Counted from the stretch's first letter, positions 9,501-64,000 are shown. The stretch: DNA of 64,000 bases from Epithemia pelagica (GCA_946965045.2 OX337230.1:3162001-3226000); one strand, 5' to 3'. The notes: a model not told the origin generated them from the sequence alone. Program-made: numbers and translations.

Positions 9501-10706
9501 GTACCGTCTTGTCTAGTTGTCATGGGTGGTCAGTTGCGCGAAAACCGAAAGTATGAAAGTGCCTTTTTGTTTGCCAATGCGGCTATTGCGTTAATGGACC
9601 GTTTTCCAAACGAACGCGGACTTGGTTTCTTTCGAGCAAAGTTGGGTCTTTATGCCTCTCTATTTTGTCTTCGACAGTCATTTCGCGACTGTATTGAACA
9701 ATACTTGGACCTTTACAAATGGGGATACTCGCAAGGGGAAACAGAGAATGGTTTGGGTGCTGCAATGTGTGCCATGTACTCTTTTATGATTGCTTCTTTT
9801 CCTCTAAATGCCTTGTTCGAACCCAAACTGATTCTATTTGAAGAAATGGCGTTGAATCGAGGACGAAAGAATTTCTCTATCATCTTTCGGCTTATTCGCC
9901 AATACCTGTACAATCTTCAAGGTGGAGAAAAGGCATCTACGGTTCCCAGTCATGTCAATGGAGAAGCGATTACAGAAGAAGAGGCCCTTGGAATGTTGGA
10001 AGGTCCAGTCCGGAAACAAAATCTTCGAGATATTAGCATGATCCGGTTGGAACTCTCCGTCATTTTTGACGATGAGGAATCAATGAGAGAAATGGTGGAA
10101 CGTTTGGACGAATACCCGCTTCATGATGTTCTGACTGCGCGTCAGCATCTTCGTATGACATACACGGGGTTTGCCTGTCTCATTTTGTTGCAAAAGCGTC
10201 CACCTCGTAATGCCCAAACAAGAATGATGGAGCGCTGGGCAAAACAATCGCTCAAGTTTTTTGAAGAACTCGCTCGCTTTGGATCCCCCAATGCACAGAC
10301 AGTGTACGCTTGTATGAAAGCTCTTCAAAACCCAAGTGTTTCCTCGTTTGATGAAGCGATTCAAGTGTGTGGGAATGCTGGCCTATTCAACTTGACAGCC
10401 TTCATGAATGAGCGTTGTGGTCTCATGTTGATGGAACAGAGCCAAAACAGCAACGACCAAAACACGACAATGAAAGCGGATGACGGATCTACTCCAAGTT
10501 ACGAAACCTATTTGAAGTGCGCGTTTTGGTTTTATCACGATTGGGGAGCCATGGGCAAAGTATCGCAGCTGAAATCCCGCTTCGAGTGTTTGAAGAACGC
10601 CATGAAGGAAAAGGCACCATCGCAACTTAGTTCGCTGCGACGTCAAGCGGCCAAACTGGGCTTACCTCGATCAGGCACCACCACATCGACCATTAGTGAT
10701 TCCTGA
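6594..10706 (+). CDS. STAND-class P-loop NTPase + helical (TPR-like) repeat protein, copy 2, intact (1370 aa)
   Basis: LYGREEQLKQL, Walker A GYSGTGKST, Walker B LILFLDDVQWAD, TLGNIFFV, YQFAHDRIREAA and FYHDWGAMGKVSQL. These resemble the core of bacterial Ser/Thr-kinase-AAA-GAF-histidine kinase multi-sensors, without the kinase or GAF/HK modules. Confidence 0.9.
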   Translation: MALPSSIHKNDDENMLEYSSVECGTLAEQLDETHYDSRIDADDDLEKGRIKFASTRERLYGREEQLKQLEGIYNHQVTSQNKHQNLLVTDGLPASNEGHSMVEDVDGEEPVSNDEQLEQEETGRAPLDANVDESIDDDKGNDQNRTSSSPLSQIVFLAGYSGTGKSTLVDSFVQRIRQQRNHAHGTTTKSSSSSSSPAFRSPLHYLSGKFAGPMNAGAPFSALAHALNQFVVQLVATKRSSQPHHQHHDQWIRSFLRRLRKLEIYAGSDHAAVLEKTLLPALPRLLQKATAVPKTSSTTMGSDSLATGTSSNNASHGRTLPDDSSNASATTDSPSSMNMNLVQYAFQNFLRALSTTSKTTAPLSSLQPPLILFLDDVQWADAASLQLLSSVLLDSTLSNILFVLAYRSNEVDQNHEFMKLRQKVQEARGYTQPDDEPVIAPTTPTTTMTPPLPSSTLFTGVHYMELFNLSPDSIAEFIADSIEKTPEDVSVVADAIYQKTLGNIFFVKQALEELVRKNALYYDMVMFEWQFGDVSRVELEQFLSEDVLEMVQSKIKTMPQTLQKAMVLAAYTSQSTIELSLLQALLEADDSVDREECSHGALQSLMNRAFMEGLMLRDKNRSITDSTSVSSSSSSYVKHKMGNGGALRNGNSSIRAKPPPPSPFGRCTKYQFAHDRIREAACASVPAGREREELLLRISQVLLKQSSTLMTLTAESSRVLVHRTPIIEGSETDKEYDDDLDEDPDWMLFTAARHLNSISPELTHDMNLPNLNLTAGKIAVSKGAFNEALIFLQAGVDRLDPSSCWKEPTYTLSLELKVTLAETEQMLGHNEKTLDLAKEIFQSATSLADKSRVHHCYLEATNSLNNNDYGLAVDTAVDLLKLYNIELPGSPERRQIRREKMMLRFGLRGRSLLCVAKFPVATDQLLLTQVVVASRAMLYSLFCKRSNLSLLLGYRMLRIILRNKFITKEVPSCLVVMGGQLRENRKYESAFLFANAAIALMDRFPNERGLGFFRAKLGLYASLFCLRQSFRDCIEQYLDLYKWGYSQGETENGLGAAMCAMYSFMIASFPLNALFEPKLILFEEMALNRGRKNFSIIFRLIRQYLYNLQGGEKASTVPSHVNGEAITEEEALGMLEGPVRKQNLRDISMIRLELSVIFDDEESMREMVERLDEYPLHDVLTARQHLRMTYTGFACLILLQKRPPRNAQTRMMERWAKQSLKFFEELARFGSPNAQTVYACMKALQNPSVSSFDEAIQVCGNAGLFNLTAFMNERCGLMLMEQSQNSNDQNTTMKADDGSTPSYETYLKCAFWFYHDWGAMGKVSQLKSRFECLKNAMKEKAPSQLSSLRRQAAKLGLPRSGTTTSTISDS

Positions 10707-11594: not shown

Positions 11595-13427
11595 ATGGTG
11601 AAAAAAGATAGAAAGAAAAAGGCCGAGTCTCAAGACCTGAGTCCAGAAGAGCTAGCGTTGTTGCGTCCTTTCTTGGAAGAACTCAAGAAGCGTCGTCGTT
11701 CGCATACCAAGCGTTCTAGAAAAAACGACGACGACGCTTCGTATTGGACATCGTCTGATTCGTCCGTCAAGTCCTCACCTGCAACCAACCGTCGGCGGCG
11801 TGGTGGAAGTCTCCGTTCTCACAAATCAGCTCGCCGAAGTTCCAGGTCTCTTTTGATCAACGATTGCGACAACTCCTTCTCCTCCGTCGAAGACGGTCCT
11901 TCCAAGGCGGTCAAGAATATTGCAAAAATGGAAGAGAAACGCTCATCGAGCTCTAGTCAAAGAATGTTGACAGCTAAGACAGAGGATGCCTCATCCAGAG
12001 ACCACAGCGGCGGTGAATCATTGCCGTGTGCTGTTTGTGGTCAAGAGTCGTTTTTGGTGTGTCTTAAATGCAAGATGACTCCCTACTGCAGCAGCGACCA
12101 CCAAATGCAAGATTGGATTCAACACAAAAAAACATGCGGTCAAGATCCACCAGAATTCCAAAAGAAGGCTCAGTGTTACAGCACTAATAATGAATACCAA
12201 GACCGGAAACAACAGATGAAAACCTACGGCCAAGCACCACCAGAAAGCACCAAGAGGGCTCAGTCATCTACCGTTGATCACGAAGACCAAGACCGGAAGC
12301 AACAAATGAAAACCTACGGCAAAGAACAACCTGAAAACCTAAAGATGAACGTAGGTGACCAGTGCACTCGTTGCTTGGAAATTCTTCAAGGAGACTGCCA
12401 TGGCAATCCTATCTTGAATACTTGCAGAGTCCCCCATCCCGAAGATTTGCAAGACTACATAGAAACTTCTTATGGACCACATGGTATGAGAGTAAAACTG
12501 CGTTGTGGTGCCTGCAGACGCAATTATGAAAGATCCTCAAGTGACAGAAATGCCTCTAAGTCCTTATCGCCCATCACACGTGGGTGCAAATGGTGCTTTG
12601 AAGGAGATCATACGATCGAACCAATGAAACGCACCGATAAACGTCGGGTCAAAAACGGCTTGGTGGTGATTCGCAAAGACGCTGATATGCAAGCAAAGAT
12701 TAATAATCTTGATGGAAATGAAGAAGTCACCATCTTGCGAATTTGTTCGGATGGTTTATTTTCGAACGATTATTCTGCTAGTCTCAAAATTTCTCTTCCA
12801 AGCTTGATTGAAGTTCAACTGGAAGATGTCGAAATGGCCAAAATTCACTTGACCCCGGAGCTGACCCCCAATGTCGAGCGTATTTCCATGCAGAATCCTT
12901 CCCAATCAAAGGAACCGGACTTCATCATTATTTGTCCTAAACTCAAGTACTTTTCCTGTCATCATTTGGATGGCTGTGGTGATTGGGTCAGAAACATGTT
13001 ACAGCATGCGACGATACTTGAAACCTTTGATTCCTACAAATTGTGGATTGGTCATATCACGTTTGCCTCAAACAAATTGAAAACAATTCGATTACATCGC
13101 GCGGACAACTTGTCCCGGTTGACTGTGTATGCTCCTCGCTTGACCATGCTAAATCTCCAATCCGCCTATTCATTGAGTACTGTTTCCTTCCTGGAGAGCC
13201 ATCCCACCTTGTCCAAGAGCTTGCCCAAGAATTTTCATTTCAATCAAGAGTAGAAAGTCAATTCTCGTAATTCGATTTTGGGATCCGAGGCAAAAAAAGC
13301 CATTCTAGATCACCCGCTATTCATTGGGGAGTTACAGGAAGATGATGATGAGTTCTTAAAAGAATGCTTGGCGAATACTCTCCGAGTCCCTTCAGAGCAC
13401 CCTCGTCTCGCAATGGGTACGACCTGA
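11595..13427 (+). CDS. MYND zinc finger + LRR-like protein, copy 1; in-frame TAG at 13251-13253, homology continues to TGA at 13425-13427
   Basis: CAVCGQESFLVCLKCKMTPYCSSDHQMQDWIQHKKTC is a zf-MYND. LRR-like LxxLxL segments follow. After the TAG the same frame reads KVNSRNSILGSEAKKAILDHP, matching the paralog's QVNSFNALLGSGAKRAIRSHP. Confidence 0.8.
12108..12335 (+). repeat. Intragenic 90-bp (30-aa) degenerate tandem repeat, ~2.5 copies, derived from the MYND tail
   Basis: CAA-GA anchors at 12108, 12198 and 12288: QDWIQHKKTCGQDPPE / QDRKQQMKTYGQAPPE / QDRKQQMKTYGKEQPE. Confidence 0.8.
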
Positions 13428-15592: not shown

Positions 15593-17503
15593 TTAGCCAC
15601 TGGTCGTCCCAATCCCCCCAGCGCCTCCGCCGCCTTGTTGTTGTTCTTCGTAGGTGGTGATTTTTTCAAACCAAAATCCCACCGCAATGAGTAAATAGGT
15701 GGTCATGAGGAGAGAGCCTTCCAACCAATTGCATTTGGGGGAACTGAGGACGACCGACACGGTAAAGACGGACAGAACGAATAGAATAATTTCAAAATGA
15801 GGAAAATTCAAGGTCATGTCACGATCCGTCACCCATCCGACCAAGACGGTGAGAGGTACGACAAAGAGCGAAATCTGCGTACAGGATCCCACCGCCACAC
15901 CCATGGCCAAATCCATCTTATCCTTGCGGGCCACGGTAATGGCTGTGACATGTTCAACGGCATTTCCCACGATAGGTAACAAAATCAAACCCACAAAGGT
16001 TCGACTAATGCCACTGTCTTGCACAAAGCCATCAATGGAATCGACCAGCATTTCGGAAAAGTACGTGACACCCAAGGTCGTTCCCAACAATCCGGCACAG
16101 GCCATCCAAAAGGGAATCGAGGCCAATTCCACTTCTTCTTCCTCCTCCTCTTCTTGTGCAACTCGATCGGCATTGTCCTTGATATCGTCCGCATTCATCT
16201 CACCTCCGTCATTTTGATCGTTGTTGGTATCTTCAAACAAGTCGGCATGCGTCTTGAGTTGAAAAACGAGGAGTTGCAAGTACATGAACAAGAGAAAAAT
16301 GGCTGCCAATCGACTGATAAACAACACATGTTCATCGTGCAAATCATAGTAACTGGCAAAGGGAGTGGGCAGAACAAGGGCAATGCCCGACAAGGCCAAG
16401 AGAGCCATGTTGGCCGTCGCGGCGGTCGTATTAAAGGATTGTTCCTTGTACTTCAAACCACCAAAAAAGAAACAACCACCCAAGACCAAGAGTAAGTTGG
16501 AAAAAATACTCCCCAACATGCTGGATTGAACGACTCGAATTTCATTGGCCATGAGAGCTTGAATGGCCAAGACGACTTCGACGGCATTGCCAAAGGTGGC
16601 ATTGATCAAACCACCAATGGTCTGATTGGTATGCAAGGCAACTTCTTCGGTAAAATCCCCCAAAATGGATGCTAACGGAATCATGACCAAAAAGTTTAAC
16701 CAAAACACGTAGGTGGCCGACCATTCTTGATAGACGGACCAGAGAGCAACCGGTCCCACCAACAAGAGGGCACTGACAATGCCTTTGCCAAAAAACAAAT
16801 CGAAAAAGTACTCGCGAATCGAGGACGAAGAGTGACTGGAAAAGGCTACATCAGAACTCATGGTACGATTGGAAACTCCTCCTGAAGGGGGTGGCGGTGG
16901 TGGAGTGGAAAAGGTATTGTTCGAAGACGACAAGAGCGACTTTGTGGAACGAGCACTGTTGGGAACCGGTGTTTGAGGATCACTTCCTACCAGCGGCGTC
17001 GTTTCTCCAACAGCCGCTACACCGCCGCCGGGAGTACTGGCACCACCACCACCAACCAAGGCCGGTGCCGACGATTGACGCAACATTTTTTCAATGCGTT
17101 TGATTTTTTGAATCTTGTCGACAACGCGCAAAAACTTCATGGCCGAAGTACTGTAATCCGTCTGACTGCGCTCTCGAATCAAGGCTGTCGGAGACGAGCC
17201 ACGAGCTCGTTCCGAATGGGGAGTCGTTGTTGTTGGCATGCTGGCAATTCGATGATGCGTCGCGACGGGAGAAAACGTGATGCTTTTTGTGGAGGCAGCA
17301 GTCGAAGCGATGTTGTTGTCGTTCTTCTGGTCGTCGTCTTGAGATTCGGAAGCTAGGTTGGCGGTCAAATTGGGTGTTGTATGACGACGCAAGGGAGGTT
17401 CCGCCAATGCTTCGTCGTCGTTGTTGGTATCGTCTCGTTTCGAACCAAGATTCCAACTGGAAAACACTCCCTCTAGTCTGCCTTGTTCAGAACAATGAAT
17501 CAA
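15593..17503 (-). CDS. CAX: CAX-family Ca2+(cation)/H+ exchanger with long hydrophilic N-tail; start codon uncertain (ORF start is TTG, first ATG at 17239)
   Basis: Alpha-repeat motifs NATFGNAVE and PIVGNAVEH, GSIFSNLLLVLG, central acidic EEEEEEE loop, AVGSCTQISLFVVP, NWLEG; about 11 hydrophobic segments. Confidence 0.92.
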   Translation of the reverse strand: MIHCSEQGRLEGVFSSWNLGSKRDDTNNDDEALAEPPLRRHTTPNLTANLASESQDDDQKNDNNIASTAASTKSITFSPVATHHRIASMPTTTTPHSERARGSSPTALIRERSQTDYSTSAMKFLRVVDKIQKIKRIEKMLRQSSAPALVGGGGASTPGGGVAAVGETTPLVGSDPQTPVPNSARSTKSLLSSSNNTFSTPPPPPPSGGVSNRTMSSDVAFSSHSSSSIREYFFDLFFGKGIVSALLLVGPVALWSVYQEWSATYVFWLNFLVMIPLASILGDFTEEVALHTNQTIGGLINATFGNAVEVVLAIQALMANEIRVVQSSMLGSIFSNLLLVLGGCFFFGGLKYKEQSFNTTAATANMALLALSGIALVLPTPFASYYDLHDEHVLFISRLAAIFLLFMYLQLLVFQLKTHADLFEDTNNDQNDGGEMNADDIKDNADRVAQEEEEEEEVELASIPFWMACAGLLGTTLGVTYFSEMLVDSIDGFVQDSGISRTFVGLILLPIVGNAVEHVTAITVARKDKMDLAMGVAVGSCTQISLFVVPLTVLVGWVTDRDMTLNFPHFEIILFVLSVFTVSVVLSSPKCNWLEGSLLMTTYLLIAVGFWFEKITTYEEQQQGGGGAGGIGTTSG

Positions 17504-32446: not shown

Positions 32447-35394
32447 TAGGGTCTTCAAGTTTCTTAGCCGAAGTTTCTCCGCCTAAATTTAGGGGCCTAA
32501 GTTTTCGTAACTTACAAGACTCAACGCCATGTCCACCGAAGTTTAGGTAGGCCCTTTTGTTAACTAGGCATAGGTACCGTAGGTATCCAACCGTTGATGT
32601 TGGCAGTTGGCATGAGATCTTGACAGGCTGATATCTTTGGGATCTTTGCAAGAACAACAACAATGATGACACATAAACGATGAACAACAACAAACGATTC
32701 AGCAATCAAACAAACTCCGATCACATTTGTTGGAGACAGGAGCAGCAGAAGTTGCAATGGAGAACGAAAGTACTGCTGACGAGCAGCCGAATACTACTGT
32801 TGTGACGTTCCAAGATCTGTCACCGTTGACAGCTGAAACACAACGACGACAAGGACAAGACGAGGAACAGCAACAACAAGAAGGCACGACGACGGCCATG
32901 GTTTCGACGACGACAACGGAAGGCGACGAGGAGCAGGATGAACCATTCGAAGTGGCTACGGGACGAAGTGACACCAACGATGAAGACGATACTACGACCA
33001 ACGACTCAACGACGTTGTCGCAAAATAAGCGAAAGCCACCCAAAAAAGAAAGCCAACCAATACATCCGAGAGCAGTTTGAGATTTCCCCTGACCCGGATC
33101 GAGAAGGATACTTGAAGATTGTGTGCATCCATTGCCAGATGTACAAAAATTGGAAGACTTTCAATGCAAGTGTTGCATCTGATCACATCGTTCAGAAATG
33201 CAAGAACGCTCCTACTGAAATTCGCCAACTCTGTGATGGCCAAACTCAAGCTAGTAAGCGTGCCAAGACACAATTGGGTTTGATTGTTGGTGGTCCACTC
33301 AGCCAAGAGAGGGTGATAGCATCAGAGTCTTCAGGTGCATCAAGTTCTGTATCCTCGCTGTCGACAAGTTTACGAGACAAGGCCAGGTCCAAACCAGGAG
33401 ACAAAGCAGGTCGCAAGAAACACCAGCAGTCGTCCATACAGAGTTTGTTGAAACTACCCTCGCACGCTTCGAGCCCATGCAACGTCTGTTGGACCCGTTC
33501 GTCCAAGACGAACTCGTCACACGGTTTGGTAAGGGTATTATGAAGTTTGTGCCCCACCACCCAGACACAATCTACAAGCGCTACGTCATGGTGATTGACA
33601 AACAGTGTCAACTAGAGCTGAACACCATGATGCAAAAGATTCCAGGAGGCATGACCATTGCAGCTGATGGTGTCACCTGCAATGGTGCCAGCACCATTCT
33701 CTACACCATTGCGAAAGGAAGTGTTAGTTTATTTGCAAAGGCCTCTCGTCTTCGCAACCTTGCCCATGCAACAGAGGCTGAGACGCAAGACATGGTTGAT
33801 TTCATGGTGAAGACGCGACGTGACTACAATTCTCCCTTGTGCTGTGTTGCAACAGACAACGCTGCCACGAAAGTTGTGAAAGAGGCATGTGAAATCTACA
33901 AGTCCAACAACCCCAAAGAGCCCAACATACTGAGCAATCGTGACTGTGCTCATTGTATTGACCTGTTGGCAAAGGATGTGGCCAAGGTCCCATGTATTGA
34001 TTCACTCCTGTCAGACATTGCCATGCTGATGGAGTTTTCAACCACAGACAATGTAGATGGGATTCGACATGAGCTAGTCCGAACTGGCGATCTACCAGCA
34101 ACCTGTGGCAATGTCTCCAACTACTCTGAGACAAGGTTCAACAAGGTTGGTATGACCTTGGAGTCGGTTCTGAACCAAAAGCCTTTTTATGAATGGTGCA
34201 ACGGGCACCATCCCATGTTTGAGCGATACTACAACTCGCGAACACAGAGGCGTAAGGAAAAGATTGATGCAACCCTTCGACTAGTTACACGTGATCTATG
34301 GGCTAAGGTGGAAGTTGTTGCCAAGATTTATGCTGTGATTGAACATGCAACAAAGCTTGTGTCGGACGATGACTTTCCAATCTCCGCGTACTACCCCGTG
34401 ATTGTTGCCATGCGCAACGAGTTGAATGGTGTATTGGGTTCAGGAACAGCAAGTGGCAGCAGATCCATTGATGCAATCTTCAATCTCCGTGGGGCACGGA
34501 ACTCCATTGTTGAGTTCTGCGACAATCGGTTCAACTATGATGGATCGGAACCACCTGGACGGAAAGTTGGTCTCTTAGACAAGTACCAAATCTGGGCTTT
34601 TCTCGTGGATCCCTTCAGGTCCAGAATCCCCAAGCGACCTATCATTCACCCATCAATTGCTCGTTGCATGCAGGATGCAATTGAGTTCTTTGTGATTCCT
34701 TCACAGGAACCACCTCCACCCCCACCACCGAATGCTGGACCTGTCGAGCCACCCAATAAGCGTCCCACTGTGTGGGGTAGGGTCGAAGCTCCGGACACAA
34801 GGGACATCAGGTTGATTGTGGATCAGGAGTTCAGGTCCTATCTTGGTCACACAGGGAAGTGGATTGATCTCTTCCCCACAGAGAGCCCACGTCCACCTTC
34901 TGATTGATTCCAGGAAGAGCGCGAACTCACGATCCAAATGGTGAGTCAGTGGGTGAGTACCACAGGTGGCCACCAAGGGAGGCTGGAGTTTTTTAGCATT
35001 GCTCCTCCAAGTAAGTTGTACGATCTTGTGATTGAACCACTTCTTTTGGTTCGTTCGACTGGCTCTATCTCTGTCGAGCGAGTTGCCAAGCCACTCAAAA
35101 ACAACGTTTGGAGTAAGTTGCGCAGTAATCTTGGGCAAGACAAGGCGGAAGTCTGTCTGCGAGCTGGGCTGAACTTACGGTATTTAATGAAGGTAAGGTC
35201 CACTGTCCGTAAAGCAACGAATGAACAAGTTGTGGATCATTGTGATGATGACTTGTTTGGTTCGATTTCTATGTATTGAAAAATGAGACTCCATAGCCGT
35301 ATTCCATAGCCACCTAAACTACAAAACCTAAACTTAGCCTAAATTTCATAGCAAGTTAAGCAAAAATTTCATTTACCTAAGTTTGAAGACCCTA
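32447..35394 (+). mobile_element. hAT DNA transposon (2948 bp), 12-bp TIR TAGGGTCTTCAA, 8-bp TSD CTCAACAG
   Basis: CTCAACAG(32439-32446)|TAGGGTCTTCAA ... TTGAAGACCCTA|CTCAACAG(35395-35402). An 8-bp TSD and a TAGGG terminus are diagnostic of hAT. Confidence 0.95.
32727..35279 (+). pseudogene. hAT transposase (BED finger, DUF659/DDE core, dimerization domain) with two frameshifts and one nonsense codon
   Basis: BED-like CIHC...HIVQKC, ADGVT, VATDNAA, RDCAHCIDLLAKD, ETRF, C-terminal SISVERVAKPLKN. Frame shifts in the A-run at ~33050 and at ATA-CA-GAG ~33437; in-frame TGA at 34905-34907. Confidence 0.9.
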
Positions 35395-55332: not shown

Positions 55333-56371
55333 GGTTTAAGTTTAAGTTTATCGTATGTCCTGAATACAAAATAGGTCAAATCCAATAAAAACACAACCTA
55401 TCTTTGGATACACGTGTACACGCATGCCTAATCTCCCCCAATGCTCATTCGTCTCCCTCCACCATACAAGAACTAAGACAATGGAGGAAGCTTCCATTCT
55501 GATGATGTTGCTTCTCCAGCAACAGAACAACAACGAAGTAGACGAATACAACCAACTGCGTAGGTCCGTAATCCGCAGAAATGCGTTACATGACCCCCTT
55601 AACTCTGCATTTATGCACCTCTATAGGTCAATGCAGGATGACGCGTTAATCACCCTTTGTGGTTTTGATCATGCAGCGTTCAATCGGCTTCTAACCCTGT
55701 TCAGACCAATGTTCAAAGCCTACACTCCTTACCCACAGTCACATAACAATCGGGGACACATGCGACGACTTACAAGGAGGAATCGTGGTAGGCGCAGGAA
55801 AATAACAGCGGTCATGTGTCTAGGACTTGTGCTGGCATGGACCCGTACTCGAGGATCCAGGAAAGTACTACAATTGATATTCGGCTTCACAGCCAACCCG
55901 TTATCAGTGTGGCTTAGATTCGGAAGGAGGATCCTGGTCAAGGTCCTTGCCAAGCATCCAGACGCCAAGGTAGAGCTTCCAACACCTGAAGAAATTGCTG
56001 TATTCAAACAGTCAATCCAAGCCAAGTACCCCTGTCTTGCCAACATTTGGGCAGCCATGGATGGTTTGAAGCTCTGTGTTGCCGCAAATCCGTTGACACA
56101 AAACATGTTTTACAATGGATGGACTCACGACCACTATGTGTCCAATCTCTTTGTCTACTCACCGGATGGCAAAATCCGTGCTTGTTTTATAAACGCTCCA
56201 GGTTCATGGCATGACTCTACACTTGCCTCTATTTCAAACATCTACAACAAGTTAGATGAACTACATGAGCGGGAGAGAGATAATGGTGGAGCCCGTGTGG
56301 TAGTTGATTCTGCCTTTGGAAGGGAAAACCGTCCCTCCTTGCTTAAGTCGCATCAGTCAAATTTTGACAAC
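55333..56371 (+). mobile_element. 3'-truncated PIF/Harbinger transposon (DDE_Tnp_4 transposase, ATG probably 55481); left boundary approximate
   Basis: WAAMDGLKL, FYNGWTHDHYVSNLFVYSPDG, PGSWHDS and VVDSAF motifs. The C-terminal region carrying the last catalytic acidic residue is missing. A candidate end TTA|GGTTTAAGTTTAAG is unconfirmed because the other end is lost. Confidence 0.85.
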
Positions 56372-56388
56372 TTGTCAAAATTTGACTG
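56354..56388. other. Perfect 17-bp-arm palindrome (1-nt centre at 56371) at the Harbinger/TET-JBP junction
   Basis: CAGTCAAATTTTGACAA-C-TTGTCAAAATTTGACTG. Confidence 0.95.
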
Positions 56389-58237
56389 TATGTTGTCTTT
56401 GTGTGTGTATTGACGTTCCATGCCGGATCACACGTCCATCCCATAGAACCGAAACCCCATGAAATAGTTGTATACAAAGACCATGGTATGTAGTACCATC
56501 ATACTCCACAAGAATATTCGGCAAAACAAAGAACCAATTTTGGGAGTCACCTGGGATTGTCTCTGTCCAGATTGCGAATGAAACAGAACCATCGTGAACA
56601 TCATAGTGTGTCGTGTTCATTAGGTTCAAACTCAGGGTAATGGCTGAGGTCATACCTCCGACTCTTCCTCCGAATTCACTAGGCATTTCTTCGCCAGCTG
56701 AATCTTCTAGATACCGGAATGTTGGAATCACCCCAGGATATTCGCGTTCACAGAACCTTTTTGCCGCTGTACTTATTTTCGGCAGTATCATCGATAATGT
56801 CTTGTCCTTTGTAAATAATTTCTCGGAAACGAAAGTAGAACCGTTTCCTCTTGCCGCAGTATTACCAACAGTTGTCATAGATCCTAAGTCTCCCTTATTA
56901 CATCTGGCATTGGCCGCCTTTCTCAGAGACCCAGTACGTGTAAATTCCCTTGCTCTGTGGTGTAATAGGTCCAACAACGTCTGGTCCTTCCGTAACAGGG
57001 ATGTCACTCGAATGTAACTAAGTGACTCTGGTCTCCCATCATTTCGGCGTGTCCGAACAATGAAAGTAATGTTTCCCCGAATACGATGGTCGTATACCAG
57101 TGGCCTTGGGTGTGTACCGGACGACATTTGCAACCATAGGTTTCGATGCAAAGCACCACTAACATATCTCCGACTCCCTTTCTTATCTGAGTCATTCCTG
57201 TTTATAATCAGCCTTGTTCGATATTGTTCCCGTGACATGTGATGTGTCATCGACTGTTTATTCCCTGGCTTTTCGATCTTTCCCTTGTCATCGAGGTACA
57301 CGTCAGGAGGTAAAAGTGGGCTCCCATCCTCCACATCGGACCATTGGTAACATTCCTTCACAGTTTTGTCATTATTAGTAAGATGTTCACCCCAATCTAG
57401 ACTCCAACAACGATGAATCTTTTTCAAGAATGCATTACTTGCAGGTTGGCCATCTTTGTGTCGCAGACGTAACCAAGACAACGGTAGTGGGACTGATGAC
57501 GATGTGATGTTGGACGACCTTGATAGTTCTTGAAATTGACGCACACATGTATAAAAAACCCCAGCCAAAGGGAAGAGGATAATGATATCTCTGAAGAGGT
57601 GATCATTTTCGTCAAGACATAAATTTTTGTTAGTCCGAATCATCATGACAGGATCTTCGAATATAGAGGACGACACATGTGTTGTCTTTTTCCTGATTTC
57701 TCTATATCTTGTCCTCGACAAGGTACATTCCAATATGAATGCATTGTGGATCGTTTTAGTTACAAGACCCACCGGGATTTGAGTAACAATCATAGGACAA
57801 CATTCTGGTATAATGTTCGAATGACTGACAACGTCATCTCTTGTCTCCACAACATCATCCATAGCCTTGTTGTATATTTCTGGGATACGTGCAAAGACAC
57901 TCGGGATATCTTTCATATCGACCTTCCGTTGTATCATCTCCTTTTCGAACGACAAACCAAAACAATCTTGATCGTCGTAACTTCCAAAGCAACGCTGCAG
58001 TAGATGCGATAGCATCCTTATTCGATCGATGTCCTTGTCCAAGACAAAGTAGCACATTCTTTCGTGTGCACTTTCGTTCCGATGCGACATGGCGACCACT
58101 GTTTCACTTATACGTTGCGTTTTCTTCTTTTCGTACTTGGCATAGGTCTCCTGTGTACATGTGAGTGTCGAAATCGTCTGATCCGATGCCATATCTTCGA
58201 AAGTGGGACGAATATGTTTCTTCTTTATGGATGTCAC
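56375..58237 (-). CDS. TET/JBP-like 2OG-Fe(II) dioxygenase, probably C-terminally truncated (likely ATG 58192, MASDQ...)
   Basis: ARCNKGDLGSMTTVG, then NTTHYDVHD (HxD), NWFFVLPN, LFHGVSVLWDGRVIRHGTS (distal His): the double-stranded beta-helix pattern of algal/stramenopile TET/JBP-like proteins. The stop codon is supplied by the junction palindrome. Confidence 0.75.
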   Translation of the reverse strand: MTSIKKKHIRPTFEDMASDQTISTLTCTQETYAKYEKKKTQRISETVVAMSHRNESAHERMCYFVLDKDIDRIRMLSHLLQRCFGSYDDQDCFGLSFEKEMIQRKVDMKDIPSVFARIPEIYNKAMDDVVETRDDVVSHSNIIPECCPMIVTQIPVGLVTKTIHNAFILECTLSRTRYREIRKKTTHVSSSIFEDPVMMIRTNKNLCLDENDHLFRDIIILFPLAGVFYTCVRQFQELSRSSNITSSSVPLPLSWLRLRHKDGQPASNAFLKKIHRCWSLDWGEHLTNNDKTVKECYQWSDVEDGSPLLPPDVYLDDKGKIEKPGNKQSMTHHMSREQYRTRLIINRNDSDKKGSRRYVSGALHRNLWLQMSSGTHPRPLVYDHRIRGNITFIVRTRRNDGRPESLSYIRVTSLLRKDQTLLDLLHHRAREFTRTGSLRKAANARCNKGDLGSMTTVGNTAARGNGSTFVSEKLFTKDKTLSMILPKISTAAKRFCEREYPGVIPTFRYLEDSAGEEMPSEFGGRVGGMTSAITLSLNLMNTTHYDVHDGSVSFAIWTETIPGDSQNWFFVLPNILVEYDGTTYHGLCIQLFHGVSVLWDGRVIRHGTSIHTQRQHTVKF

Positions 58238-58358
58238 CTCCGCTCTAGGATGTGTGCTTGTCGTTTCCGAACTTCTTGTAGTACAAAGACATAGTTAGTA
58301 CGCGGATAGAAATGCCAAATACCTGAAACTAGAATGTCTCTTCTTTTGATCGAGAGTA

Positions 58359-61300
58359 CTAATAATATAGATCAGACTTGCCTTTTCGCTTCTGTGTTAC
58401 TGGTCGTGACAGTAGAAGATTCAGTTTGGTCTCTCCTATTCTTCTCCTTTTGTTTTTTTTACTCATGAAACGGAGAGTTTCCAACGGTACACGACCCCAT
58501 GCTGTCTCTGGAAATACAGGGACCGGTCTGTAGAGACCACGATGTTCCTCTTTTGACACGCCAACTTCTTCAACTGAACCATCATGTGCATTGGTGTACG
58601 TAATTGAAGCAATATCTCCGTTGCACAAAGGGCAACTCTCGTTCATTTCAGGAGGTGTCGATTTCTGTTTCCCCATAGGAACTTGTTTTTCGGTGGTAAG
58701 GACATGACCAAGACACACCCGACAAAACTTGTGCCCGCATCTCTCGATCCGACAGTCGTTAGGACGCTGTCCATGGCATATGGCACAATATTGTTCGGAG
58801 TCTTCATCATATTCGTCTAGGACGATTGTCTTGTCTTTCTTCGCGATTAATTCCGTCTCATGTAGATCGTGTGGTATTAGCTCAGCATGACTATGACCGC
58901 ATATGGAACAAAATCGATTCTTCACCGAATTCCGGATGAAAGTACATGTTGGACAATGATAATGAGGACAGTTGGAGGTTTCTTGCCTTGTCCAACTCAC
59001 GATAGAAAAGGTCCGACTTCTATCCAGATCCTTTTTAAGCAATGAGGTCCCACAAGTGGAACAGAGTGCCTCTTTCTGATCTTCATCGTTCAATGTTCGT
59101 ACTAGATCCAAAAATCGCCGATCTTCGTGAAGTCGTTCGAGCGCCTTGTCCGCTTCTGTAATCTCTTGTATCACTTTAATGTCCTCGAATCGTTCATCGT
59201 CGGAATCCAGCATATCTTCCATTACCTCCCCTCGATCTTTCCCTTCCATTATAAACCGGCGACTGCGTTTGATCCTTGGACGTGTATCGTCATTAACGTC
59301 CTTGAAACATACACGCAGAGTCGAATCACGTTTCGCTTTATTGATAGCCGTACTCACGATATGATTGCAGGCCTTGTGACATTCTCGCCTACACGATGGC
59401 AATTCTTGAGCCCATTTCCCCATCATCTGATCACAGGACATATTAGGGGACGCCTTTGACAGGATCTCGTCGATCACACATATGATTGATACTTGGGGAA
59501 GCGTACACGCACTTGGTGCCACCGGATTCGGATACTTCTTATAAATGAATCTCCAGTCACATCCAACGAGCTCTTCCTTTATATCAACGCTCAAGAATGA
59601 TTGGATTTTCTTTTCGTCGTCCAATAGCCTTAGTTTCCGTAGACATCGAATCACTGTAGGCCTCCACGAGCGAATATCCCTTGTCGATAATGGATCGAAT
59701 ATCAACACTTCTCTTTGATGTGCTTGTAAGAGGATTAAGACAGGATCAAAAGCTTCATATTTGGTAGTGACGACGACCAACGTAGTATCGGAAGACGACG
59801 AACTCAAATCCATTGCAGTCGTTGTGTCCATTCTCAGACTATCTTCGTCGATTTGCTCAAAGCAAACGGACTTGTTGTGCCATTTATGAACCACCAGCAC
59901 AAGCATCGACCTGAATATGAGGGGAGGGATCCCCTTAAACTTAGTCGTCTCTTGAGTATTCGTCCGTAGCAAAAGGTTTTGTCTGTACTGGCGATGTGGG
60001 ACAAAAAGGACGTCCATTTTCCCATTGTCATGTTGTAGAGAACCATTCTTGTTGGTACAGCAAGCACAGGTAAAGACAAATCGCAAAACAACTTCATGGA
60101 TGCTTCCCTTACGTCTAACGGCACTTTCTTTACAGAGATCCCAAGCTTCATTGATCGCTGACATCGACTGTTTGAGGGACCAGTTAGCCATATGAATCAA
60201 ACGGTCGTTAGTGAAAGATGCAAGGTCGTCTGATGGACCAGGTTTATTCTTGAGAGGAGGTGGTTTCTTTGGTATTCCTTTAGGTTTGTCGCTACCGTGG
60301 TCAACATGTGATTTACTTTCCAACAGACCCACCTTTGATTGAGAGGAAGATTTTTTTGTCGTCGCTTGTTTTCCTTTTTGTGGTTTCTTTTTCAATGCAA
60401 GAGTATCAAAAATGGAACTCCGATCCTCCTCGGTCGCTGACAGAGACTGAGATGGTGATTTGCTCTCGTTATTTGAAACAGTGAAAATGGTAGAACTTGT
60501 TGCACCATCACATTTACTGTCTGACGCTCGTTTACGGCGTTTCCTGTCTTGAGATCGTTGTTCATGTCGCCCCTTCTGATACTCCTTCGTCTTTGTAGCG
60601 TATTCCCGTTCCGTCGTCTGGTAATATGAAATTAGAACCGCCAAATTGGAATAGTCGTTCGCGGGATACTTAGCAGCTCTTGGTATGTCAAAATAAGGAC
60701 GAAACCAGCAATCAGGAAGTGTAAGGGCTAATGCTTTTTCAACATCGACTCCTTCCATTTCATAGGAGTCAGATTCCAATACCCGATAGACAGCTGCCAT
60801 ATGTTGAACGCTCCAAACCATTTCTCGGACTGGTATTGTTCTGTCTTTCCGAAACTTCGATCTATCAGACGTCATGTAGTCCAATATTTTTGCAGCCACG
60901 ACATTAAGTCGTCTCTCCATCGAATACGAGTTGAGGACAATATCAGCGAGCATAGGATGGGCTCCAAGAAACACCTTGAGGGATCGAGTAAAGCTTGCGC
61001 TCGACTTTGATCTTGTCGTTGACGGGAATTCCTTGTCCCACAGACGAAGTGCGTCTCCATATAGAGTTTGTTCGAATAGGTCGATTCCTGGTGAAATAAA
61101 ACTACCAGCTCCGTCACTCTTGTTTCCCTCTTGTTGTTCTTCGATCGTCTCTACAAGTCTCAGTATCTTCGGGAAACAAACAGCAGCATGCGAGGCGATA
61201 TCACTGAAAATACTTGATCCACAGCGCAAGAGGGATACGAATATGGTTTCACCTCCATATGTAGTGGAGAAATCTGTCCAATTATCAGTGTTGGAATAAA

Positions 61301-61382
61301 CAGAACGATACCACTCGATTGTATATTCATAACATATCAAGTCTGGGAAATATCGATTGGAATCTTCTACCGAATCAGCCAT
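58359..61382 (-). CDS. 1007-aa protein with two C-terminal RING-like zinc fingers and a possible degenerate Ulp1/C48-like domain
   Basis: CAICHGQRPNDCRIERCGHKFCRVC...CPLC is a C3HC4 RING. CSTC...CPHYHCPTC...CSIC is a second RING-like finger. LILLQAHQREVLIFDPL...W...C resembles the Ulp1 core without clear catalytic His/Cys (low confidence). Confidence 0.75.
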   Translation of the reverse strand: MADSVEDSNRYFPDLICYEYTIEWYRSVYSNTDNWTDFSTTYGGETIFVSLLRCGSSIFSDIASHAAVCFPKILRLVETIEEQQEGNKSDGAGSFISPGIDLFEQTLYGDALRLWDKEFPSTTRSKSSASFTRSLKVFLGAHPMLADIVLNSYSMERRLNVVAAKILDYMTSDRSKFRKDRTIPVREMVWSVQHMAAVYRVLESDSYEMEGVDVEKALALTLPDCWFRPYFDIPRAAKYPANDYSNLAVLISYYQTTEREYATKTKEYQKGRHEQRSQDRKRRKRASDSKCDGATSSTIFTVSNNESKSPSQSLSATEEDRSSIFDTLALKKKPQKGKQATTKKSSSQSKVGLLESKSHVDHGSDKPKGIPKKPPPLKNKPGPSDDLASFTNDRLIHMANWSLKQSMSAINEAWDLCKESAVRRKGSIHEVVLRFVFTCACCTNKNGSLQHDNGKMDVLFVPHRQYRQNLLLRTNTQETTKFKGIPPLIFRSMLVLVVHKWHNKSVCFEQIDEDSLRMDTTTAMDLSSSSSDTTLVVVTTKYEAFDPVLILLQAHQREVLIFDPLSTRDIRSWRPTVIRCLRKLRLLDDEKKIQSFLSVDIKEELVGCDWRFIYKKYPNPVAPSACTLPQVSIICVIDEILSKASPNMSCDQMMGKWAQELPSCRRECHKACNHIVSTAINKAKRDSTLRVCFKDVNDDTRPRIKRSRRFIMEGKDRGEVMEDMLDSDDERFEDIKVIQEITEADKALERLHEDRRFLDLVRTLNDEDQKEALCSTCGTSLLKKDLDRSRTFSIVSWTRQETSNCPHYHCPTCTFIRNSVKNRFCSICGHSHAELIPHDLHETELIAKKDKTIVLDEYDEDSEQYCAICHGQRPNDCRIERCGHKFCRVCLGHVLTTEKQVPMGKQKSTPPEMNESCPLCNGDIASITYTNAHDGSVEEVGVSKEEHRGLYRPVPVFPETAWGRVPLETLRFMSKKNKRRRIGETKLNLLLSRPVTQKRKGKSDLYY

Positions 61383-61494
61383 ATTAACGTGCGATTCAAT
61401 CAGCTTGGGGAAGAAACAAGGAGAAATTTTCTTTCGATGCAGGGTTCCGATGCAACTTGATACTACCGTTTCTCAAGCTTGCGTGATGGAAACC

Positions 61495-63190
61495 CTGGAG
61501 GGTCTTGGTCGATAGGGATGGAGGAGTGAGGGATATGGGTGTACCAACTTGAAATCCAATAGGGTCTTGGTCGATAGAGATAGAAGAGGGAAGTATGGGG
61601 GCGCACCAACTTGGTGTCTCGGCCCTTCAACAGAACCACCAATCAAGATATAGCAATCCAATGGGGTCTCCTTGGTCGATGTAGATGAAGGAGGGATGGA
61701 GATGGGTGCACCAACTTGGTGTCTCGGCCCTTGTTCCAATCGGGAAGGAGTAGCAACACAGCAATCCAACAAGGTCTTGGTCGGTGGAGATGGAGGAGTG
61801 AAAATTATGTGCACCAACTTGGTGTCTTGATCCTTGTTCCAATCGAGAAGGAGTGGCAACACAGCAATCCAACAGGGTCTTGGTCGATGGAAATGGAGGG
61901 GTGAAGGAAATGGGTGCACCAACTTGGTGTCTCGGCCCTTGTTCCAATCGGAAAGGAGTAGCAACACGGCAATCCAACACGGTCTTGGTCGATGGAGATG
62001 GAGGGGTGAAGGAAATGGGTGCACCAACTTGGTGTCTCGGCCCTTGTTCCAATTGAGAAGGAGTAGCAACACGGCAATCCAACAGGGTCTTGGTTGATGG
62101 AAATGGAGGGGTGAAGGAAATGGGTGCACCAACTTGGTGTCTCAGCCCTTGTTCCAATCGGGAAGGAGTAGCAACACAGCAATCCAACAGGGTCTTGGTC
62201 GATGGAAATGGAGGGGTGAAGGAAATGGGTGCACCAACTTGGTGTCTCAGCCCTTGTTCCAATCGGGAAGGAGTAGCAACACAGCAATCCAACAGGGTCT
62301 TGGTCGATGGAAATGGAGGGGTGAAGGAAATGGGTGCACCAACTTGGTGTCTAGGCCCTTGTTCCAATCAAGAAGGAGTAGCAACACAGCAATCCAACGG
62401 GGTCTTGGTCGATGGAAATGGAGGGGTGAAGGAAATGGGTGCACCAACTTGGTGTCTCAGCCCTTGTTCCAATCGGGAAGGAGTAGCAACACAGCAATCC
62501 AACAGGGTCTTGGTTGATGGAAATGGAGGGGTGAAGGAAATGGGTGCACCAACTTGGTGTCTCGGCCCTTGTTCCAATCGGGAAGGAGTAGCAACACAGC
62601 AATCCAACAGGGTCTTGGTCAATGGAGATGGAGGGGTGAAGGAAGAGGGTGCACCAACTTGGTGTCTCAGCCCTTGTTCCAATCGGGAAGGAGTAGCAAC
62701 ACAGCAATCCAACAGGGTCTTGGTTGATGGAAATGGAGGGGTGAAGGAAATGGGTGCACCAACTTGGTGTCTCGGCCCTTGTTCCAATCGGGAGGGAGTA
62801 GCAACACAGCAATCCAACAGGGTCTTGGTCGATGGAAATGGAGGGGTGAAGGAAATGGGTGCACCAACTTGGTGTCTCAGCCCTTGTTCCAATCGGGAAG
62901 GAGTAGCAACACAGCAATCCAACAGGGTCTTGGTCGATGGAAATGGAGGGGTGAAGGAAATGGGTGCACCAACTTGGTGTCTCAGCCCTTGTTCCAATCG
63001 GGAAGGAGTAGCAACACAGCAATCCAACAGGGTCTTGGTCGATGGAAATGGAGGGGTGAAGGAAATGGGTGCACCAACTTGGTGTCTCGGCCCTTGTTCC
63101 AATTGAGAAGGGGTAGCAACACAGCAATCCAACAGGGTCTTGGTCGATGGAGATGGAGGGGTGAAGGAAGAGGGTGCACCAACTTGGTGT
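61495..63190. repeat. Tandem satellite, 105-bp unit, ~16 copies
   Basis: The AACTTGGTGT anchor recurs at 61608, 61713, 61816, then exactly every 105 bp from 61816 to 63181. Left-edge units are more diverged. Confidence 0.97.
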
Positions 63191-63191
63191 C

Positions 63192-63928
63192 TTTTGCCCT
63201 TTGTTCAATAGAATCCGCACCAATCCGACCGTTCAGATTGTTGAAAATGGTCTTCTGGGATAATAGGAGGGAAGAAGCAGCGGCAATCCAGCAATCCAAC
63301 CAGTTTTGGTCGATGGAAATTGATGGGAGAATGAAATGGGTGCACCAACTTGGTGTCTTCGCCCTTTTTCAAACAGAACCACCAATCCAGTCGTTCAGAG
63401 CGTTGAAAATTGTCTTGTGGGATGATTGGAGGGAAGAAATAGTTGCCAAACAGCGATCACATGGTTGGGTTTTCATGGAAACAGAAGAAAATGATTAGTG
63501 GGCATGTAGGAAAACGACAAAACGAACTCTCACTGTTGTCTTGTCGACTTGGCTTACCTTTTTGCCCTTTGTTCAATAGAATCCTCACCAATCCGACCGT
63601 TCAGATCGTTGAAAATGGTCTTCTGGGATAATAGGAGGGAAGAAGCAGCGGCAATCCAGCAATCCAACCAGTTTTGGTCGATGGAAATTGATGGGAGAAT
63701 GAAATGGGTGCACCAACTTGGTGTCTTCGCCCTTTTTCAAACAGAACCACCAATCCAGTCGTTCAGAGCGTTGAAAATTGTCTTGTGGGATGATAGGAGG
63801 GAAGAAATAGTTGCCAAACAGCGATCACATGGTTGGGTTTTCATGGAAACAGAAGAAAATGATTAGTGGGCATATAGGAAAACGACAAAACGAACTCTCA
63901 CTGTTGTCTTGCCGACTTGGCTTACCTA
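63192..63928. repeat. Two near-identical ~368-bp units built from longer (~166-bp) relatives of the 105-bp monomer
   Basis: TTTGCCCTTTGTTCAATAGAATCC recurs 368 bp apart (~63193 and ~63561). AACTTGGTGT spacing 63181 to 63347 is 166 bp. Confidence 0.92.
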
Positions 63929-64000
63929 GCACCTTTCCAATTTGAAAAAGGAAATGATTCTCTTTGTGTTCGCCTGTTTGTTGTAGCTGTTGTTGTTGTT

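Follow-up and report, generated by a model that had tools for sequence, protein, structure and literature searches.

A large multicopy DNA transposon carrying a predicted TET/JBP-fold dioxygenase gene in a non-fungal genome

The stretch of DNA analysed here, referred to throughout as the window, is 64,000 nt from Epithemia pelagica (GCA_946965045.2 OX337230.1:3162001-3226000). The window is part of contig ctg1314l in ENA assembly ERZ21939226, and copies of its sequences were compared within that assembly. Near its right-hand end are two open reading frames (ORFs), ORF-A and ORF-R, and a set of tandem arrays, which together belong to a mobile element that we call element A. An original prediction, made from the sequence of the window, had described two co-oriented, apparently intronless ORFs about 120 bp apart as the chromatin-modifying cargo of a large mobile element; the two ORFs are indeed both on the minus strand, and the gap between them is 121 nt. 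Both are regarded as real genes because they have homologues and show purifying selection. All ORFs described here are intronless, and broken copies of an ORF were not joined, the intact copy being used as the reference. The features of this part of the window are:

56354..56388, no strand: break junction, a perfect 17+1+17-nt palindrome (CAGTCAAATTTTGACAA c TTGTCAAAATTTGACTG), with 0 expected by chance
56375..58237, minus strand: ORF-A (TET-A), 620 aa from a GTG codon; probable start at the first ATG (58189), from which the product is 604 aa
58238..58358, minus strand: spacer between the RING gene and TET-A, 121 nt
58359..61382, minus strand: ORF-R, 1007 aa, with an ATG start
61496..63263, no strand: left subterminal array of a 105-bp unit, about 14-15 good copies from 61671 and degenerate copies from 61496
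63192..64000, no strand: outer array and start of the unique left subterminal region; 368-bp unit x2 to 63927, with a related 162-bp period

Tandem Repeats Finder assigned 14.5 copies of the 105-bp unit, with 94 % matches, to 61671-63192, and then periods of 162/368 bp as far as 63927. The array had been said to start about 110 bp upstream of the first ATG, and the first of the degenerate 105-bp copies, at 61496, is indeed 114 nt upstream of the ATG of ORF-R at 61382. The spacer between the RING gene and TET-A is longer by about 335 bases in one further copy (L001; loci are designated in this way below). A low GC content had also been claimed for the ORF pair. The depression exists, as the pair has 43.7 % GC and the remaining window 48.2 %, and it is real though small, with every 5-kb window in 1-56000 at or above 45.4 %. 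However, its size had been overstated, as the values quoted, 35-38 % for the pair and 57 % for a host gene, come from the tails of the distribution for 60-bp lines (in the pair, mean 43.7, sd 4.8, range 31.7-55.0; in the remaining window, mean 48.2, sd 6.5, range 28-68).

The first ORF had been called a TET/JBP-like dioxygenase, and the predicted structure bears this out. In a word search, ORF-A matched only P0001 (647 aa, 99 % identical) and a paralogue, P0002 (593 aa, 32 % identical), both from ERZ21939226, and a large profile search with TET-A returned 741 relatives at E<=1e-3, all without names. H529, D531, D534 and H591 are invariant in an alignment of 50 of the relatives. H529, D531 and H591 make up the HxD...H iron triad, and the window copy still has all of them. 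The AlphaFold2 model built on the 50-sequence alignment had a predicted local distance difference test score (pLDDT) of 82 and a predicted template modelling score (pTM) of 0.85. When this model was compared with the PDB using Foldseek, human TET2 (E 7.6e-11), Chlamydomonas CMD1 (E 5.7e-10), Coprinopsis CcTet (E 3.7e-8) and Naegleria NgTET1 (E 5.6e-7) were found ahead of FTO and AlkB (E 3e-5 or worse), and ranks 1-24 among the matches listed were all TET2, CMD1, CcTet or NgTET1 (7.6e-11 to 2.7e-6). In the viral library BFVD, the first named Foldseek matches are phage or giant-virus proteins annotated as 2OGFeDO JBP1/TET oxygenase. On the Foldseek ranking and the BFVD annotations, ORF-A is predicted to encode a TET/JBP-fold nucleic-acid dioxygenase belonging to a clade that current profiles miss. 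The likeness to TET2, CMD1, CcTet and NgTET1 lies in the double-stranded beta-helix with its HxD...H triad. However, TET-A is only 9-15 % identical to these proteins and has an additional large, beta-rich N-terminal region, and the Cys-rich domain of TET2 was not detected in it.

Several results weigh against the TET/JBP assignment. ORF-A has no Pfam match at E<=1, and none of the 50 relatives matches Tet_JBP in Pfam at E<=0.01, so that a profile comparison with TET_JBP, which had been suggested as a check, gave no match for either the window protein or its relatives. Sequence and profile searches of the PDB with the TET-A family were also blank. Because of these blanks, the family assignment rests on the predicted fold, for which the template modelling scores of the Foldseek matches are modest (0.4-0.56 on the target). 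In canonical TET/JBP enzymes, 2-oxoglutarate is bound by an Arg in the strand that follows the distal His. In the 50 relatives, there is no conserved Arg at the expected position, 10-16 residues after H591, and the sole near-invariant Arg is R590, beside H591.

Because this Arg is not conserved, the chemistry of TET-A could differ from that of the canonical enzymes, being CMD1-like, JBP-like or directed at N6-methyladenine (6mA). Among the alternatives considered here, the one that survives best is a protein with the TET/JBP fold that carries out a reaction other than the demethylating oxidation of 5-methylcytosine (5mC) to 5-hydroxymethylcytosine. The reaction could be hydroxylation of thymine (as for JBP), ascorbate-dependent addition of a glyceryl group to 5mC (as for CMD1) or demethylation of 6mA (as reported for CcTet), or the substrate could be RNA. 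We regard this as a possibility to be taken seriously, though not the expected outcome. In its favour, CMD1 scores close to TET2 and has the highest identity (13-15 %), the Foldseek matches include a structure of CcTet with 6mA DNA bound, the conserved Arg is missing from the alignment of relatives (alignment A2) and the Pfam Tet_JBP profile fails to match. On the other hand, the closest structural matches all act on DNA bases, mainly 5mC, and the transposon precedent is 5mC-directed (PMC12730594). The relatives of TET-A in alignment A2 are up to 1739 aa long and single members bear Helicase_C or HA (helicase-associated) domains, indicating that some members of the clade are fused to helicase modules.

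The second ORF had been described as a RING/Ulp1-like gene, and here the two halves of the description part company. ORF-R has an N-terminal domain (aa 16-232), a zinc-ribbon/FYVE-like region (about 734-831) and a C3HC4 RING (C866-C920) with the spacing C866-x2-C-x12-C-x-H-x2-C-x2-C-x26-C-x2-C920. The C-terminal piece scanned alone scored 23.6 bits against zf-C3HC4, for which the Pfam cutoff is 21, and the RING of PCGF1 matches ORF-R at E 4e-4. From its sequence, therefore, ORF-R is judged to carry a true C3HC4 RING finger. In contrast, no Peptidase_C48 match was found with Pfam in the whole protein at E<=1 or in residues 430-720 alone at E<=10, and when ORF-R was compared by BLASTP with the C48-bearing protein that this genome encodes, E was ~1, which is not significant. 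In the best local match between these two proteins (548-586 versus 671-707, with the register extended upstream by eye), ORF-R has Ala where the 'DHYAV' motif of the other protein has its putative catalytic His. With both the profile scans and BLASTP negative, the Ulp1 identity was rejected on these sequence comparisons, no structural comparison having been made. The window copy of ORF-R has a 1-nt deletion at nt 2928 of the coding sequence relative to other copies, which changes the last ~30 residues.

That the pair is the cargo of a large mobile element is confirmed by comparison of copies, which are multicopy and co-occurring and have sharp ends, terminal inverted repeats (TIRs) and a target site duplication (TSD). 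At 90 % identity, TET-A forms a cluster of 23 members and ORF-R one of 17, on contigs of matching lengths in the one assembly, and the housekeeping genes RIO1 and BRF1 of the same assembly have 1 cluster member each. The left end of element A, CGTCTAAGGAGG..., is base-exact in six loci (L001 and L004-L008) with unrelated flanks, and the right end, CGTCTAAGGGCAGCG... (read inward), is base-exact in four loci. As both ends begin with the identical 9 bases CGTCTAAGG, the TIR is 9 bp and the element reads CGTCTAAGG...CCTTAGACG. A search for longer TIRs or for subterminal motifs shared between the ends turned up nothing beyond the 9-bp TIR and motifs rich in CGCG at both ends. Four complete copies are 21.5, 22.1, 23.7 and 25.3 kb long, with the difference in size mainly due to array length. 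Immediately beyond the left ends of two copies of element A (L006 1-3363 and L007 2972-3868) are fragments of PIF1-helicase genes, possibly related to Helitrons, and a reverse-transcriptase ORF of Copia type (RVT_2). These copies sit in neighbourhoods rich in transposable elements.

The dinucleotides flanking the four complete copies are TA/TA, CA/CA, TA/TA and TG/CA. Agreement in three of the four has a chance probability of 9e-4. The length of the TSD is proven by an empty site, as the copy of element A in ctg1293l is nested in a second transposon, element B (see below), of which an uninterrupted copy is present in L003. The empty site reads ...GCCACAGACTTCG... / ...CATTGCCACAGACTTCG... and the occupied site ...CATTGCCA-CA[CGTCTAAGG...CCTTAGACG]CA-GACTTCG..., that is, GCCA-CA[element]CA-GACTTCG. 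Hence, the TSD is 2 bp and element A is a multicopy DNA transposon of the TIR, cut-and-paste type, 21.5-25.3 kb in length.

Complete copies of element A contain nine ORFs and three tandem arrays, namely a 105-bp left subterminal, a 170-bp internal and a 44-bp right subterminal array. The first is the RING gene, followed by TET-A, the genes for a 291-aa and a Cys-rich 412-aa protein, the candidate transposase of 1376 aa and then three genes for small proteins (305, 203 and 204 aa). Rightward past ORF-A in copies other than that in the window, the 291-aa gene is followed by the 170-bp array (at least 16 units), the 412-aa gene, the ORF for the protein of about 1376 aa and a further three, small, ORFs. 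The 105-bp array varies in copy number between copies of the element and starts about 640 bp inside the left terminus, in agreement with the prediction that it is a subterminal repeat. The right subterminal array (44-bp x4.8) is about 340 bp inside the right end (L013 2381-2593), and the internal array (L013 11252-13998; L005 13134-20115) ranges from 16 to about 40 units, which explains most of the size differences between copies.

The ends of element A are rich in CpG. The observed/expected ratio in the first 240 bp is 1.49 at the left end (L005 3943-4182, equivalent to window positions 64330-64569) and 1.44 at the right end (L013 2038-2277), and is about 0.9 in host genes. The first 240 bp of the left end include about ten GCGCGTG-like motifs. 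From the sequence, it is plausible that these motifs and the CpG-rich ends are candidate sites for transposase binding and sites sensitive to methylation. The 105-bp array is CpG-poor (observed/expected 0.42), and GpC is depleted across the element (0.53-0.68 versus 0.84-1.0 in host ORFs).

Among the genes of element A, TET-A is the most constrained and is under strong purifying selection. Its ratio of non-synonymous to synonymous polymorphism (pN/pS) is 0.14 (41 synonymous, 20 non-synonymous; p=7e-14), with no stops in six copies, and the ratios for the 291-aa protein (p291), the candidate transposase, the 412-aa protein (p412) and the RING gene (ORF-R, with indels among copies) are 0.24, 0.25, 0.37 and 0.42, respectively. 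A sister family, represented by L011 (ctg1263l 350852-372189, to the contig end), has homologues of the transposase, p412, p291, the ORF-R N-terminal domain (aa 16-232), p188 and p213, and a tandem array upstream of the ORF-R homologue. However, in L011 there is no TET at the syntenic position, between the homologues of p291 and the ORF-R N-terminal domain. Because L011 keeps the other genes without TET, TET-A is true cargo, and part of ORF-R belongs to the core set of the lineage.

The copy in the window is not complete. Its left terminus (CGTCTAAGG...) is at window-equivalent position 64569 (L004 6814), i.e. 569 nt past the end of the window, and homology to every other copy ends at 56386, within the last codons of ORF-A. 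As a result, about 45 conserved C-terminal residues of TET-A are replaced by VKF-stop. The C-terminus of the 647-aa form is also conserved in the paralogue P0002. In the AlphaFold2 model, the part lost includes the last jelly-roll strand (610-615) and a helix (619-632; numbering of the 647-aa form), and with these gone the window copy probably does not encode an active enzyme. The 35-nt palindrome at the junction suggests fold-back or hairpin repair of a break. Beyond the junction is a truncated PIF/Harbinger-type transposase ORF (55424-56413, plus strand; DDE_Tnp_4, profile positions 13-86 of 158), which belongs to another element because no other copy of element A has it. A simple insertion at 56386, with the element continuing elsewhere in the window, was considered and rejected, as there is no homology to the right half of the element anywhere in the window. 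The earlier statement that no transposase of the element is visible in the window was thus correct, since the right half, transposase included, is absent. Having neither a transposase nor a right TIR, and only an incomplete TET, the window copy is an immobile fragment of 8.2 kb.

Taken together, it is very likely that window positions 56386..64000 are most of an 8.2-kb fragment of element A, a multicopy element that carries a TET gene, with the structure described above and the roles proposed for its genes below. Three points qualify this. Element copy numbers are counts of protein-cluster members rather than the product of a genome-wide DNA search, one of the four complete copies lacks a matching TSD (TG/CA), and the CpG observed/expected ratios of the element genes (0.8-1.07 versus about 0.9 for the host) argue neither for nor against methylation. 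As to the roles, TET-A may oxidise or otherwise modify 5mC on the DNA of the element itself, perhaps at the CpG-rich ends. Such modification would let the element escape methylation-based silencing, as proposed for fungal transposons that carry TET genes (TET+). The RING protein may be a ubiquitin ligase whose target is a factor involved in chromatin or silencing.

Of the four complete copies, only that in ctg1347l (L013 5441-9571) has an unbroken 1376-aa ORF, which is split in the others. In two word searches, the protein had no relatives other than P0189 (57 % identity) and P0236 (22 %). The P0189 family has 53 cluster members in ERZ21939226 and so is more abundant than element A, and it is found in the sister family L011. 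Motifs common to the three proteins are a D that ends a hydrophobic strand (YMD or YID) and a second D (IKGD or IKCD) followed by AG.Y.S, then C-x-C after the second D (CC in P0189), [D/E]xxH, H(3)H and ES.HK. On these motifs, the protein is a candidate DDE transposase of an unclassified lineage that is at most CMCT-like. The CMCT clade (EnSpm/CACTA, Mirage, Chapaev, Transib, Plavaka and ESTA) has TSDs of 2-5 bp and 5'-CA..TG-3' termini; a 2-bp TSD is found in Mirage and in ESTA, which is EnSpm-like with a TA TSD (PMC12730594). Element A shares with these two lineages the 2-bp TSD, which is TA in two of the four complete copies, and the 1376-aa protein has D, D, H(3)H and E, kept down to 22 % identity, but has C-x-C in place of C(2)C. 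The termini also differ, being CG..CG rather than CA..TG, and similarity to CMCT sequence profiles was not detected.

The searches gave the transposase call no support. Pfam searches at E<=10 with three members of the family returned only low-complexity noise, a PDB profile search was blank, and the AlphaFold2 model, built on a 4-sequence alignment, had a pLDDT of 36. It might then be that the 1376-aa protein is not a transposase, and that element A is non-autonomous or depends for its movement on another of its own proteins, such as the 412-aa or 291-aa protein, or on a transposase acting in trans. Database and structural support for a DDE fold is indeed lacking and the ORF is intact in just one of the four complete copies. 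However, even a relative of only 22 % identity retains D, D, [D/E]xxH, H(3)H and E, the low-confidence model puts the first D at the end of beta-1 and the second after beta-4, as in RNase H-like transposases, the pN/pS is 0.25, and this is the sole large ORF common to element A and the sister family L011 (57 % identity). We therefore consider it improbable that the protein has another role.

The original prediction had drawn an analogy to the KDZ, Plavaka and Zisupton elements. If it held, element A would be a KDZ or Plavaka-type transposon and its second gene a Zisupton-like Ulp1 peptidase/zinc-finger protein. TET/JBP genes do travel with KDZ and Plavaka transposons in fungi (PMC12730594), and the H(3)H motif of the candidate transposase resembles that of the CMCT clade, which includes Plavaka. 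However, no match to a transposase or CxC family of Pfam was obtained with any ORF of element A, the TSD has 2 bp rather than the 8 bp of Zisupton (PMC12730594), and the termini are CG..CG rather than CAC..GTG. ORF-R is without a Peptidase_C48 signal, and its BLASTP match to the C48 protein of the genome is not significant. The TSD length, the termini, the blanks in Pfam and the negative C48 result largely refute the assignment, which we consider very unlikely. Least credible of all is the idea that a normal host locus for chromatin modifiers was multiplied through segmental duplication or through haplotig redundancy in the assembly, for which only the derivation of the copy counts from a single assembly can be cited, and which is refuted by the empty-site comparison and opposed by the unrelated flanks at six left and four right ends, the base-exact boundaries, the TIRs and 2-bp TSD, the single-member RIO1 and BRF1 clusters and the nesting of one copy within another transposon.

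That other transposon, element B, is itself a carrier of a TET gene, as TET-B (P0002), the 32 %-identical paralogue of TET-A, is inside it. Copies of element B were found at L003 8990-17200 (8.2 kb), L002 9757-15686 (internally deleted and without the integrase segment) and L001 1-4339. The ends are imperfect TIRs of about 25 bp (TGTTAC...GTAACA) and the TSDs, GAGT and GATT, are 4 bp. Pfam matches to Integrase_H2C2 (3e-4), rve (0.012) and Peptidase_C48 (2e-3) were all below the Pfam cutoffs. The two integrase ORF pieces were searched apart against the PDB, and the core of the mouse mammary tumour virus (MMTV) integrase was matched at E 1e-3. Element B also carries a gene for a 227-aa CXC-like protein. 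Ginger1 DNA transposons, reportedly described by Bao, Kapitonov and Jurka in 2010, are said to have a Gypsy-like integrase with a C-terminal Ulp1 or OTU protease, together with TG..CA termini and a 4-bp TSD. Element B shares with Ginger1 the H2C2 and core integrase, fused or adjacent to a C-terminal Ulp1 protease, as well as TGT..ACA termini, short TIRs and a 4-bp TSD. It differs in that its TSDs are GAGT and GATT and not CCGG or CCGT, and in carrying the TET/JBP gene and the CXC-like protein. Judged by these features, element B is classed as a Ginger-like DNA transposon unrelated to element A. At L003 9039-9802, element B contains a MITE-like (miniature inverted-repeat transposable element) insertion of 764 bp that the L002 copy does not have. 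The TIRs of this insertion are about 17 bp long (GGAATTGCCTTAAAAGC / GCTTTTAAGGCAATTTC), and GAT is apparently duplicated (3 bp).

To our knowledge, transposons with their own 5mC-modifying enzyme have been documented so far only in three fungal groups. The TET+ DNA transposons of fungi are reportedly described by Iyer et al. in 2014. Eleven TET+ lineages are listed in fungi by Kojima (2025), namely Dileera, Kyakuja, Zisupton, hAT7, IS3EU, PHISTA, EnSpm, ESTA, Plavaka and Helitron1/2, and escape from 5mC-based silencing has been proposed for them; Ginger is not listed (PMC12730594). The elements described here resemble these in having TET/JBP cargo, and in that unrelated lineages in one genome hold related TET genes. 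However, the host is non-fungal by gene content and context, and the TET family is one that Pfam Tet_JBP does not see. The transposase of element A fits none of the 11 lineages and the second carrier is Ginger-like and so off the list. Element A is also large (21-25 kb), with three tandem arrays and an additional RING protein. Other anti-silencing factors of transposons are VANC of VANDAL elements and the SET-domain genes in HarbingerS/MuDR of Phytophthora (PMC12730594). These are likewise epigenetic modifiers encoded by transposons and presumed to protect their own copies, but they differ in enzyme class from element A, for which a protective role is putative. Among the papers searched, none combined TET/JBP, diatom and transposon. 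New here are the host group, the divergent TET clade, the unclassified candidate transposase and the predicted Ginger-type second carrier.

The broadest interpretation, to which we would assign an even chance, is that capture of TET/JBP genes by DNA transposons extends beyond fungi. Two unrelated lineages in one non-fungal eukaryote (probably a microalga) would then carry paralogous TETs under purifying selection, element A with a transposase in no described superfamily (2-bp TSD, CG..CG) and the other carrier being a Ginger-type integrase/Ulp1 element, and the 741 relatives would form an unannotated protist clade whose chemistry is perhaps non-canonical. The 741 unnamed metagenomic relatives suggest a large unannotated clade of transposon-borne modifiers of DNA bases in aquatic protists. 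If correct, this would be the first evidence that such capture extends outside fungi. Transposons with their own 5mC-modifying enzyme are a direct sign of mobile DNA fighting epigenetic silencing, and two independent carriers in one genome, with TET the most constrained gene, would make counter-defence a general strategy. The TET+ element A and its TET-less sister family in the same genome form a natural experiment that could test whether methylation is lowered in cis. The findings also flag a TET/JBP clade with hundreds of metagenomic members missed by profile libraries, and a candidate new lineage of DNA transposons.

Elsewhere in the window, the plus strand has two neighbouring ORFs for paralogous AAA_16 ATPases, one of 721 aa (1251-3416) and one of 1370 aa (6594-10706). 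A MYND-finger protein and a Na/Ca exchanger are among the products of other host genes, at 11595-13253 and 15593-17503, respectively. Window positions 32455-35386 share 66-75 % nucleotide similarity with L003 18216-21238. The L003 segment encodes an 835-aa protein with a weak DUF659 match, and its window counterpart includes a 476-aa ORF (33477-34907). These two segments probably represent another repeated gene family, perhaps derived from a transposon.

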